In this document: positions 35,449-63,732 of the stretch, one piece after another
How positions within the stretch are numbered: the first letter of the stretch is position 1
Layout: every line of letters begins with the position of its first letter
From: Eutreptiella sp. 'Long Island Sound 2002'
Taxonomy: Eukaryota > Protista > Euglenida
Length of the DNA stretch: 64,000 bases
NCBI GenBank assembly: GCA_964036045.1
Contig: OZ038379.1
Span: forward strand, 9,114,001 to 9,178,000
Direction of reading: 5' to 3'
The notes under the pieces: model-generated
What the model was told of the DNA's origin: nothing
Seen by the model: only the letters and a program-made list of their open reading frames with translations
The model's database searches: none
Translations under genes and position numbers: made by a program

Positions 35449-35609
35449 ATGTTGTGTGTATTCCTGGTGCTGCTGTTCGGCACTGCTGCAAGTCGACTAC
35501 CAACCCCTGGACAGTGGGTGATGGAACACAACAGAAGACGATGCCTTCACTCAGTCCCGGATATGGTTTGGAGTGAGACTGTGGAACGCGGTGCAATTGG
35601 GCACGCCAA
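35449..35609 (+). CDS. Exon 1: signal peptide plus CAP N-terminus
   Basis: [53 protein letters not shown](N). Donor AA|gtattt; upstream pyrimidine tract plus CAG at about 35397. Confidence 0.82.
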
Positions 35610-62600: not shown

Positions 62601-63732
62601 CTCGAAAAAGCAGAGCACTCTCCTTCGGAATGGTCAGGCACAAAACCTCTGTTCTGGTGTCCCTTGCGCTGTCTTAGTGTCCCACGGTTTGCTAGCTGCA
62701 CCACAGGCCAGCGATGCACTTGGCAGTCACAGTTCCTTCCGGTTGGCTTCCGTTGGGGAAGACCCCTGGCCCTCAACTGTTTTACTGCACCTGCAGTGTA
62801 CTGTGGGGGGGTTGTCTAGCGGTGGACTGCCCTTTGTGAGCTGCGGGACGGACATTCCAGTCTCACCACGTGCCATCTACCACCAACAAGCAGGTCACCT
62901 ACCGGGGGGGGGGCGGGGACACAGGGTAGAATTTCTGTGTCACAAATTCTGTGCAGAATGTTTGTGCGCAATTTGTTCGGTGTGTTTAAAGATTTGCACG
63001 GGTATGCGTTCCGCTGTGCCTTCGCTCACTTGTACCATGGCAGAGGATTTGGTGAATGATGATTGGGTTCCCTTGGAAGTCGCAGAAGTGCTGATGTGGT
63101 GTTTCCTCATTTGTAGTGCTCCTGGGGCATTCAATGGGGTGCAGACAAGAGTGCTGGTCGATGCACCAGGAAAGTCCTCCGGGAAATAACAGCAGCCGTC
63201 CACCGTTTCTCATGAGCAATTTTTGCCAACCCTGCATGGCTTGTTCGCTCATTTTTATGAAATGGCACGGGTTTTGTCGCGCCAGAATTTGTAGATCCGG
63301 AGTTTCCTAGGCACGGAATCCTCCCCCCCCCTCCCCCGGTAAAAGATATGGAACTGGGCGCTGGTGGTACTGCACGGCCTTCTACCAGCCTGCATGGGAC
63401 ACACCCCCATCCCCCCGCCGGCAAGTTGACTGTCCTCCATTCCATGCCCGGGCAGCAACTCCAGGCATACTGGTGCCCTCATGCCTTGATCTCAGACTGC
63501 GTGCCTGTGAACATGTTCATCGGACCTTCCGCAACCGTCACGAAGACAGTGGCTATCTCTGAGCCCTTGGCCTCCTGCAGTACCCCCTGCGGGCAGGGGT
63601 GCCGGGCCAACAGCGACTGGTCCGCTGCCATGGACACTTTTGGCGTCACGGTGAAACCCGGGGAGCTGGTTGTCACACGCCTGGACAGGGATGAGAATTG
63701 GGGCATGCAGTTGGAGATCCCTTGCTGCAAAG
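35449..63732 (+). CDS. Multi-exon secreted modular protein: signal peptide - CAP/SCP - 2x Sushi-like - GH17 beta-1,3-glucanase - TSP1 - Cys-rich domain; continues beyond the window
   Basis: Nine exons: 35449-35609, 38081-38387, 42377-42767, 46015-46250, 55288-55619, 57695-57968, 60111-60246, 61809-61985, 63496-63732. All introns are GT-AG, all phases are compatible (2,0,1,0,2,0,1,1,1), and the 2251 nt read as one uninterrupted frame of 750 codons. Confidence 0.88.
37142..37902 (+). repeat. ~760-bp duplicated repeat, copy 2 (in intron 1)
   Basis: Matches 31002-31763. Confidence 0.92.
38081..38387 (+). CDS. Exon 2: CAP/SCP domain core
   Basis: [40 protein letters not shown]. Acceptor ctctcag|, donor AAG|gtgccc. 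Confidence 0.92.
38555..38620 (+). other. Degenerate tRNA-derived sequence (B box)
   Basis: GGTTCGAATCC at 38603-38613 within a tagg/ccta T-stem; no complete cloverleaf. Confidence 0.3.
40064..40183 (+). mobile_element. tRNA-derived SINE-like head, copy 2
   Basis: A box TAGCTAAGTTGG, B box GGTTCAAACCC (40115-40125), acceptor-like pairing ctggca/tgccgg. Anticodon arm is non-canonical; tail shared with 2319-2449. Confidence 0.6.
40181..40795 (+). repeat. 85-bp tandem satellite, about 7.2 copies
   Basis: Unit gtggggatccccgagacggcaggggtgacgtagccactttgcccacaagtgggccacttctgattttgccccccgctctgcagcg starts at 40201, 40286, 40371, 40456, 40541, 40626 and 40711. Confidence 0.97.
40800..41459 (+). pseudogene. 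C-terminal fragment of a SAP-domain protein, probably transposon-derived
   Basis: ORF 40749-41252 continues in frame past TAG 41250 to [28 protein letters not shown] (SAP consensus), stop at 41457-41459. Confidence 0.55.
42377..42767 (+). CDS. Exon 3: two Sushi/SCR-like Cys-rich repeats
   Basis: C...C..KCRPGYW...[15 protein letters not shown] and C...[28 protein letters not shown]. Acceptor cttacag|, donor A|gtatgt. Confidence 0.85.
44824..44908 (+). repeat. ~85-bp CA-microsatellite-associated element (copies 44824-44908, 45262-45346, 55039-55123; partial about 45829-45868)
   Basis: acattgctgcagtg.g.acagagctgtagag.ggtg.tgt.tcatag.gaacgctattgc.ttggttgaa.t.a.tggg..tcac, each copy ending in or next to (CA)n. 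Confidence 0.8.
45344..45788. repeat. (CA)n microsatellite, about 440 bp
   Basis: Near-perfect dinucleotide run. Confidence 0.99.
46015..46250 (+). CDS. Exon 4: GH17 N-terminus
   Basis: FVGVNFA...FKLFDY...[23 protein letters not shown] (cf. GH17 GVxY..VRLYD..V.VPN). Acceptor ccgcag|, donor GAG|gtatgc. Confidence 0.88.
46662..46734 (+). other. tRNA-derived pseudogene or SINE head (CAC loop, B box)
   Basis: ctcacaa loop followed by aggtcgtgGGTTCGATCCCcggagcgggca. The 5' half is degenerate and the acceptor stem does not pair fully. Confidence 0.45.
46962..48440 (+). repeat. Three-copy tandem array (units about 480, 462 and 535 bp) with internal (CATACA)n and (TATGTG)n tracts
   Basis: Units start at 46962, 47442 and 47904 with ggttctggtccaagtgc. 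Length differences lie in the hexamer tracts. Confidence 0.95.
49040..49811 (+). pseudogene. L1/Tx1-clade LINE ORF2 C-terminal fragment (zf-RVT region)
   Basis: APLWNSRLL...MLRVRDLI, then a frameshift, then [13 protein letters not shown]...[17 protein letters not shown]...[13 protein letters not shown]. Confidence 0.75.
49812..49945 (-). pseudogene. RNase H N-terminal fragment of a second LINE, opposite strand
   Basis: [45 protein letters not shown] (cf. YTDGS...G.G..F...D.RN...L.G..QTNNRAE). Confidence 0.7.
50691..51122 (-). mobile_element. cap: Endogenous CRESS-DNA virus capsid gene, N-terminal half (3'-truncated)
   Basis: Arg-rich N-terminus [32 protein letters not shown], then [22 protein letters not shown] and [29 protein letters not shown], a recurrent CRESS capsid motif series. 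Similarity fades after about YDIDLGVV. Confidence 0.85.
51178..52362. mobile_element. TA-microsatellite-inserted non-autonomous element, family A copy 1 (1185 bp)
   Basis: Bounded by (TA)n. Subterminal inverted 15-mer ctacacccctctccc / gggagaggggtgtag; internal ~165-bp subrepeats. No coding capacity recognised. Confidence 0.8.
52417..53799. mobile_element. TA-microsatellite-inserted non-autonomous element, family A copy 2 (1383 bp)
   Basis: Same termini and internal subrepeats as 51178-52362, one more subrepeat, visibly diverged. Separated from copy 1 by (TA)n 52365-52416. Confidence 0.8.
53812..54403. mobile_element. Fold-back MITE, family B (592 bp, ~220-bp imperfect inverted arms) in a (TA)n tract
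   Basis: ggcacaacgcgtctacggcccc... versus ...ggggccgtagacgcgttatgcc. Inner arm gacacttcaaagttgctaaaaataggtagttcttaccgagtgacatcatccccc is inverted at about 54200-54258. Confidence 0.85.
54512..54545 (+). promoter_or_regulatory. CRESS-virus rolling-circle origin stem-loop with nonanucleotide CAGTATTAC
   Basis: Perfect 11-bp stem tgctctgaagg (54512-54522) / ccttcagagca (54535-54545). The 12-nt loop tccCAGTATTAC has the nonamer at 54526-54534, fitting the NANTATTAC consensus. Confidence 0.9.
54549..54866 (-). pseudogene. rep: Endogenous CRESS-DNA virus Rep, SF3 helicase C-terminal part, three in-frame stops
   Basis: Manual minus-strand translation: [102 protein letters not shown]. It contains WWDGY, Walker B, motifs B and C (IIVTS) and the arginine finger (LLRR). 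Confidence 0.9.
55288..55619 (+). CDS. Exon 5: GH17 with the catalytic acid/base Glu
   Basis: VALGNEP...KIRVTVP...SYPPKDGAF...[11 protein letters not shown]. Acceptor tttccag|, donor AG|gtcccg. Confidence 0.92.
57695..57968 (+). CDS. Exon 6: GH17 with the catalytic nucleophile Glu
   Basis: [16 protein letters not shown]...[13 protein letters not shown]...ATPENAAVY...YLFE. Acceptor caacag|, donor GAG|gtgcgc. Confidence 0.92.
60111..60246 (+). CDS. Exon 7: GH17 C-terminus
   Basis: AFDEQLKSG...[15 protein letters not shown]; joining exon 6 gives YLFE|AFDE. Acceptor tttgcag|, donor G|gtatgt. Confidence 0.9.
60688..61214 (+). pseudogene. Penelope-like reverse transcriptase fragment (intron 7)
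   Basis: [20 protein letters not shown] (PLE-type motif B, GxPMGxPxS), then WFRDNVLIA (60859-60870) at the YxDD position. Continues in a shifted frame. Confidence 0.5.
61809..61985 (+). CDS. Exon 8: thrombospondin type-1 (spondin-like) domain
   Basis: [53 protein letters not shown]; phase 1-1 exon. Confidence 0.93.
63496..63732 (+). CDS. Exon 9: unassigned Cys-rich extracellular domain
   Basis: (D)[18 protein letters not shown]...[26 protein letters not shown]...[22 protein letters not shown]. Acceptor tctcag|, donor G|gtgtgc; phase 1-1, compatible with exon 8. Confidence 0.75.

Follow-up and report, generated by a model that had tools for sequence, protein, structure and literature searches.

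The window analyzed here is a 64,000-nucleotide (nt) stretch of the genome of Eutreptiella sp. 'Long Island Sound 2002' (assembly GCA_964036045.1, contig OZ038379.1, positions 9,114,001 to 9,178,000), with a GC content of about 55% and long (CA)n tracts. Its plus strand carries nine exons that can be joined into a single frame with CAP, Sushi/CCP-like, GH17 and TSP1 domains. Exon borders were set from open frames, GT/AG positions and homology, and the reading frame was checked exon by exon as well as arithmetically. Exon 1 (35449-35609, or to 35615) supplies the start codon, a signal peptide and the N-terminal part of a CAP domain with the motif HNxxR; two bases are left over with either donor. 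The remainder of the CAP domain is encoded by exon 2 (38081-38387), whose GC content at third codon positions (GC3) is 0.84, and exon 3 (42377-42734) contributes a linker followed by two Sushi/CCP-like modules. The GH17 domain starts in exon 4 (46015-46250), which contains no ATG and follows the acceptor CCCACCGCAG. It has its core with the acid/base glutamate (ALGNEP) in exon 5 (55288-55619) and the nucleophile glutamate (GETGWP) in exon 6 (57695-57968), and ends (LYLFE/AFDEQ...) in exon 7 (60111-60240), which closes with the phase-1 donor ATT/GTGGCG (in splice sites, slashes mark exon borders). Exon 8 (61809-61985) is a 177-nt cassette exon, phase 1 at both borders, that encodes one TSP1 repeat. 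Exon 9 (63496-63732), 237 nt long and likewise of phase 1-1, encodes a 79-residue orphan module with six cysteines, and its donor AAG/GTGTGC points beyond the window end. The introns contain tandem repeats of 462 bp (three units) and 85 bp (seven units) within 46962-48381 and 40180-40795, respectively, and a (CA)223 tract (45344-45789) that exceeds its counterpart in the corresponding ENA record by 20 nt. In intron 4, two related open reading frames (ORFs) with a repeated unit (50844-52094 and 52834-53439, plus strand) have no Pfam match and probably belong to a repeat family.

All nine exons are free of stop codons in frame, and all eight introns (1.5 to 9 kb) run from GT to AG. Donor and acceptor phases agree at the eight junctions (2, 0, 1, 0, 2, 0, 1 and 1), and none of the split codons (AAT, TGT, AGG, TAT and GAC) is a stop. 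The AGG codon at the border of exons 5 and 6 encodes Arg, the residue found there in most close relatives (FFAH-R-xNP). Exon 3, whose frame is favored by the codon score, ends at the phase-1 donor CTT/GTGAGC and has its last Cys codon split as T/GT over the junction with exon 4. Read-through tails after exons 3, 7 and 9 score as non-coding, and the unspliced frame of exon 7 runs on for 10 codons to a stop at 60270-60272. In total the nine exons amount to 2212 nt, that is, 737 codons and one base, open at a phase-1 donor; extending exon 9 to the stop at 63786-63788 raises the count to 755 codons. The sequence-only reading of this DNA had proposed nine GT-AG exons in one frame of 750 codons, and both its exon count and its approximate length agree with these figures. 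The interpretation favored here, to which a probability of roughly 0.5 is given, is that a single, very long gene for a modular extracellular glycoprotein starts in the window with its first nine exons and continues downstream. The order of parts in this protein would be signal peptide, CAP, two Sushi/CCP modules, GH17, TSP1 and orphan module, then two Cys modules, eleven TSP1 repeats and a mucin-like stretch.

Two of the GH17 exons score above the gathering threshold of PF00332 (exon 5, 34 bits, E 3e-8; exon 6, 48 bits, E 2e-12), and exons 4 to 7 align in order along complete GH17 relatives (tblastn E 1e-8 to 2e-37). In alignments with the solved plant enzymes 6JMS and 2CYG, ALGNEP falls on AVGNE and the GETGWP stretch on (T/S)ESGWPSAG, where we take these glutamates to be the acid/base and the nucleophile. 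Judged from this alignment, the domain looks like a catalytically complete endo-beta-1,3-glucanase, as the sequence-only reading had held. Identity of the GH17 exons to paralogues is 53-72%; exon 4 is 54% identical to the paralogue P0002 (tblastn E 1e-18) and exon 7 is 72% identical to the L002 paralogue, and exon 6 is 59-70% identical to its relatives. These values also bear on the idea that the GH17 exons stem from a copy that has lost its first exon and is decaying or no longer translated. Such a copy would be in keeping with the missing start codon of exon 4 and with the fact that no transcript was found; it is nevertheless extremely unlikely in view of about 324 codons in four exons that have neither a stop nor a frameshift, the conservation of both catalytic glutamates, a GC3 of 0.67-0.94 and the identity to paralogues.

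A HMMER search with the exon 5 frame over 1.84 billion cluster representatives returned 100 hits, the best of which are 53%, 48% and 47% identical. The nearest relatives are two paralogues from the same genome, P0002 (53%) and P0005, followed by environmental euglenid-like transcripts and the Euglena gracilis sequence EG_transcript_11364 (P0013). In P0002, P0005, P0013 and a further paralogue, P0116, a Met and a signal peptide directly precede the sequence FVGxNFA. None of the full-length relatives inspected ends after the GH17 domain: it is followed either by Cys-rich modules or by a Ser/Pro linker that leads into a hydrophobic or transmembrane tail. The secretory signal together with the C-terminal anchor or modules therefore indicates that this clade comprises predicted extracellular, surface-held glucanases. 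A scan of the JGI (Joint Genome Institute) metagenomes with exon 6 yielded only two distant loci (36-38% identical). Exon 4 departs from the clade in having no Met or signal peptide of its own; the good acceptor at its start lies 14 nt ahead of FVGVNF, the site where the paralogues end their signal peptide. As exon 4 lacks an ATG and starts at an acceptor, the GH17 part needs an upstream coding exon that ends in phase 1. Upstream of exon 4, exon 1 alone encodes a strong signal peptide, and exon 3 offers the phase-1 donor GTGAGC. After exon 7 a linker or anchor of the clade type is absent, and modules come next if the splice between exons 7 and 8 is real.

The CAP domain is recognized by Pfam in two halves, one in exon 1 (profile positions 3-36, E 0.02) and one in exon 2 (67-117, E 0.0012). 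With 16 and 20 bits these halves fall below the Pfam cut-off of 21.1 because the domain is divided between two exons. In phmmer comparisons, exon 2 matched the CAP domain of yeast Pry1 with an E value of 5e-14 and GAPR-1 with 5.5e-9, and exon 1 gave a weak collinear match to Pry1 residues 17-41. All four motifs that we take to be the CAP signatures (HNxxR, G[EQ]N, GH[FY]TQ and YxxxGN) can be read in the sequence. The signal peptide of exon 1 equals the verified signal peptides of the paralogues in hydrophobicity. For exon 3, the Sushi profile reached 17.4 bits against a cut-off of 20.7 (E 0.006), and all 12 matches in the PDB were to CCP proteins, including C4BP CCP1-2 (E 3e-5), CR1 and beta2-glycoprotein I. 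The alignment to C4BP covers two modules, each of which has two extra cysteines in exon 3. Single-sequence AlphaFold2 models had a predicted local distance difference test score (pLDDT) of 38 for exon 3 and 55 for exon 9, both too low to support a comparison of folds.

The same region allows a different gene model, in which CAP and Sushi modules form a separate type I membrane protein with its stop (42890-42892) in the exon 3 read-through, and the GH17 gene, with or without the TSP1 and mucin parts, starts from an exon of its own at 45861-45936 (plus strand). The unspliced exon 3 includes a 19-residue hydrophobic stretch with a mean hydropathy of 1.65, and every GH17 relative in the clade starts with a signal peptide of its own, with no further domain on the N-terminal side. 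The candidate first exon has an ATG, an Ala/Leu-rich, weakly hydrophobic stretch and a phase-1 donor (GGT/GTAACA). Its peptide is, however, a poor signal sequence, with a 10-residue window of 2.2 compared with 2.6-3.4 in verified ones, and the 78-nt intron that would follow it is an outlier beside introns of 1.2-9 kb. Since the read-through of exon 3 also scores as non-coding and exon 3 has a good donor, GTGAGC, of fitting phase, this division is considered unlikely.

Exon 8 was assigned by PF19028 (TSP1_spondin, 65.8 bits against a cut-off of 41, E 4e-18) and by PF00090 (39.2 bits against 21.6), and the TSP1 hallmarks WxxW, CSxxCG and six cysteines can be read in its sequence. It has no in-frame ATG after its acceptor and therefore requires an upstream phase-1 donor, which exon 7 provides. 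That exon 9 is coding is supported by an open frame with biased codon use, by a GC3 of 0.77 and by borders that are both of phase 1; it had no Pfam match and no relative in the word search. Word searches with the frames of exons 9, 2 and 8 found neither relatives nor transcripts; they covered a protein length of 0.55-1.75 times that of the query, a range that would miss longer fusions. Exact look-ups of the ORFs of the window returned no named record.

The same strand was followed past the window on the 1.09-Mb contig ctg10473_39x_l of the ENA assembly ERZ25074135, in which the exon 5 frame is present as an ORF, via the downstream loci L004 to L007 (window-equivalent positions x are 64448 + z for L006 and 74228 + z' for L007). 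Two 75-nt exons of phase 1-1 (L006 857-931 and 3954-4028, plus strand) encode a 25-residue module of the form CxDGxxNxDExxVDCGGxCxxC. These are followed by eleven TSP1 exons on the same strand (L006 6746-19128, window-equivalent 71194-83576), of which the first measures 171 nt and the others 165 nt. Each of the eleven has a YTGCAG acceptor, a GTATGT donor and phase 1 at both borders; they are nearly identical to each other and lie 0.6-1.4 kb apart except for one gap of 4.5 kb. This array is a textbook case of exon duplication in a euglenid. Exon 8 has the same type of acceptor, CTCTGCAG, and the same donor GTATGT as the eleven downstream exons. The possibility that it is a recent copy of an array exon together with its flanks was dropped because introns 7 and 8 do not resemble the array introns at the nucleotide level.

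Beyond the array lies a stop-free, mucin-like frame of 1,412 codons rich in Ser, Thr, Pro and Ala (L007 10405-14640, plus strand, window-equivalent approximately 84.6-88.9 kb). A phase-1 acceptor, TTTGATGCAG, at L007 10646 falls exactly where the Ser/Thr-rich part begins and would define an exon of approximately 1,170 codons. The other two frames across this stretch are also open over 200-420 codons because its composition is biased. Phase 1 is held by the downstream exons through the eleven TSP1 exons into the mucin exon. The nine exons of the sequence-only reading stand, but the model is incomplete at about 750 codons, since the continuation on the same strand extends for at least 25 kb past the window. 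Neither a membrane-anchor exon within 4 kb after the mucin exon nor the 3' end was found, and an ORF with a TIG domain farther downstream may belong to another gene. If all of these parts belong to a single gene, the product has more than 2,500 residues. The array of 165-nt TSP1 exons and the 75-nt Cys-module exons hold under any gene model.

The paralogue P0116 offers a precedent for modules placed after a GH17 domain. It corresponds to A0A7S4LB64, a transcript-derived protein of 625 amino acids from Eutreptiella gymnastica, and to the paralogue locus L008 6034-7068. The genomic frame P0011, on another contig of ERZ25074135 (32x coverage compared with 39x for the contig of the gene), is 100% identical to UniRef100_A0A7S4LB64 over 345 residues, and the two diverge precisely at an intron. 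On this basis the organism is E. gymnastica, a marine photosynthetic euglenid, or a near-identical strain. In P0116 the GH17 domain is followed by small Cys-rich module exons joined by the phase-1 splices G/GTGTGC...CTAG/GA and G/GTATGC...ACAG/GC. Residues 540-562 (approximately) form a CxDGxxNGDExGxDCGGxC module, the same module that occurs downstream of exon 9; it has no Pfam match and recurs in two E. gymnastica genes. With its order of GH17 and phase-1 modules, P0116 supports the fusion by analogy from within the same species. P0116 itself is probably inactive because it reads AVGTQP in place of GNEP and has thereby lost the acid/base glutamate; to judge from this replacement, it may be a glucan-binding, non-hydrolytic protein.

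The junction of exons 7 and 8 can also be read as the boundary between two genes. A CAP-Sushi-GH17 gene would then end at the stop at 60270-60272, and a TSP1-mucin adhesin would start with an exon at 60339-60393 (plus strand) that is spliced to exon 8. The unspliced frame of exon 7 does stop after 10 codons, the candidate first exon, which has a good phase-1 donor (GCT/GTAAGC), codes for a hydrophobic peptide, and GC3 falls from the GH17 exons to exon 8 and the TSP1 array. Such an exon lies, however, in T/G-rich low-complexity DNA, a source of chance hydrophobic frames, and the second gene would start merely 67 nt past the stop of the first. As all full-length relatives extend C-terminally past the GH17 domain and P0116 sets a precedent for phase-1 modules at this place, a split at exon 7 appears unlikely. 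Dividing the locus at both places gives three co-oriented neighboring genes (CAP-Sushi, GH17 and TSP1-mucin), whose apparent unity would result from common, compatible GT/AG sites. This arrangement pools the evidence for both two-gene models, and no transcript joins the parts; yet it demands both weak alternative first exons together and leaves the GH17 protein without the C-terminal extension found in all relatives, which makes it very unlikely.

The nine exons support the single-gene reading in that they are collinear on one strand, agree in phase and produce no stop where they are joined. Several observations weigh against it. Neither a transcript nor a transcript-derived protein of this gene was found in any collection searched. 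A Pfam scan of 99 of the exon 5 hits detected GH17 in 96, X8 in 12 and PAN in one of these nearest GH17 cluster representatives, and CAP, Sushi or TSP1 in none, so that the fusion is without parallel among them. GT sites are plentiful, and phase matching alone is therefore weak evidence. Further points are the two weak alternative first exons, the unspliced end of exon 3 as a possible membrane anchor and the early stop in the unspliced exon 7. In addition, GC3 is uneven, with 0.76-0.94 in the CAP and GH17 exons compared with 0.39-0.50 in exon 8, the TSP1 array and the mucin exon. The gene models are not told apart by GC3 or splice-site strength. As to the parts themselves, the sequence-only reading had named a secreted protein with CAP, two Sushi modules, GH17, TSP1 and a Cys-rich domain and had called the combination unusual. 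The signal peptide in exon 1 bears out secretion, the domains were recovered by profile, PDB or relative matches (the Sushi-like modules tentatively, and exon 9 by its open frame, codon bias and borders), and the combination is indeed absent from the 99 representatives.

Two other elements were identified in the window. An intron-less ORF of 292 residues on the plus strand (6590-7468, GC3 0.90) encodes a leucine-rich-repeat protein (LRR_8, E 1e-30) with the N-terminus MGNCC, a possible acylation site. Farther downstream, a retroelement (20839-25004, plus strand) has a gag-like ORF with 212 near-identical copies (at least 90%) in the same assembly, together with a weak tyrosine-recombinase match, a reverse transcriptase domain (RVT_1, E 2e-16) and an RNase H-like part; it looks like a multicopy DIRS-type element. 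No tRNA or Rfam matches were obtained in the 64-kb window, which is eukaryotic and not of human origin.

If the exons form one gene, a member of the euglenid clade of surface-anchored GH17 proteins would have lost its own signal-peptide coding sequence and anchor, and its GH17 domain would have become an internal part of a gene built mostly from phase-1 cassette exons. The signal peptide would route the protein to the secretory pathway. The mucin-like stretch is predicted to be heavily O-glycosylated and extended, with the CAP domain and the glucanase near the N-terminus, either at the cell surface or within secreted mucilage. Were the protein held by a C-terminal anchor, the TSP1 array and the CCP modules might bind with CAP and GH17 at the far end. 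The GH17 domain may cut external beta-1,3-glucans, either laminarin or chrysolaminarin (dissolved or particulate) of other algae or those in the walls of parasitic fungi or oomycetes. CAP, CCP and TSP1 domains could bind lipids, sterols or glycans and tether the enzyme to its target, the CAP domain possibly binding sterols or lipids as Pry1 and PR-1 do. The sequence-only reading had drawn a link to paramylon, the storage glucan of euglenids. This link is doubtful, as all clade relatives have a secretory signal and a surface anchor that point to external glucans; since the granules are cytoplasmic and the whole GH17 clade is secretory, a protein that carries a secretory signal is unlikely to take part in breaking paramylon down.

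Each of the domains is ordinary, and mosaic extracellular proteins are known; what is new, conditional on proof from transcripts, is the combination of CAP, CCP, GH17, TSP1 array and mucin-like stretch. A literature search for CAP-GH17 fusions and for TSP1 in euglenids found nothing relevant. If the parts are joined in one messenger RNA, the gene would be, as far as the searches reach, the first fusion of a CAP domain with a GH17 glucanase, with a predicted TSP1/mucin-like extension. It would then be a candidate for the handling of external laminarin-type glucans or walled parasites by a wall-less marine euglenid and would document exon shuffling of 'animal-type' matrix modules in Discoba. A wider proposal is tentative and carries more doubt than the gene model: euglenids may, independently of animals, have evolved symmetric phase-1 cassette exons that shuffle TSP1, CCP, CAP, Cys-knot and mucin modules and embed an active enzyme, in this case in a surface protein of more than 2,500 residues, with a PR-1-like and a PR-2-like domain side by side near its N-terminus, for beta-1,3-glucan capture or for defense against walled parasites.

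Among the systems available for comparison, P0116 shares with the gene of the window the species, the euglenid GH17 clade and phase-1 Cys modules after the GH17 domain. It differs in having its own signal peptide before GH17, in lacking CAP, Sushi, TSP1 and the mucin stretch, and in its replaced acid/base glutamate, which the window GH17 keeps. The GH17 proteins EG_transcript_11364, L002 and P0105 resemble the window GH17 in sequence (43-60% identity), in both glutamates and in being secretory. In contrast to the gene of the window, they consist solely of a signal peptide, GH17, a Ser/Pro linker and a tail that is transmembrane or hydrophobic. Work by Takeda and colleagues in 2015 reportedly characterized E. 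gracilis EgCel17A as a GH17 endo-1,3-beta-glucanase.

Plant GH17 proteins (PR-2 and the glycosylphosphatidylinositol (GPI)-anchored GH17-X8 type) share the catalytic motifs, and the alignment of the window GH17 with PDB entries 6JMS, 2CYG and 1GHS (E 1e-9 to 1e-5) implies the same fold. Unlike the window protein, they add X8/CBM43 and a GPI anchor, and to our knowledge the plant CAP protein (PR-1) is always separate from GH17 (PR-2), both of them acting in defense. Properdin, complement C6/C7 and adhesins of the TRAP/MIC2 type are extracellular binding proteins with tandem TSP1 repeats, sometimes CCP modules, and symmetric phase-1 exons. These TSP1/CCP mosaics of animals and alveolates come from a different eukaryotic supergroup than the organism studied here, and we know of none with a glycoside hydrolase or CAP domain. 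Among solved structures, the best relative of exon 2 is the CAP domain of yeast Pry1 (E 5e-14). Pry1 and Pry3 are much shorter than the model and lack an enzyme domain as well as CCP and TSP1 modules. Pry3 belongs to the cell wall and carries an N-terminal CAP domain on a Ser/Thr-rich stalk, a layout that would match the N-terminal CAP domain and downstream mucin-like stretch of the model.

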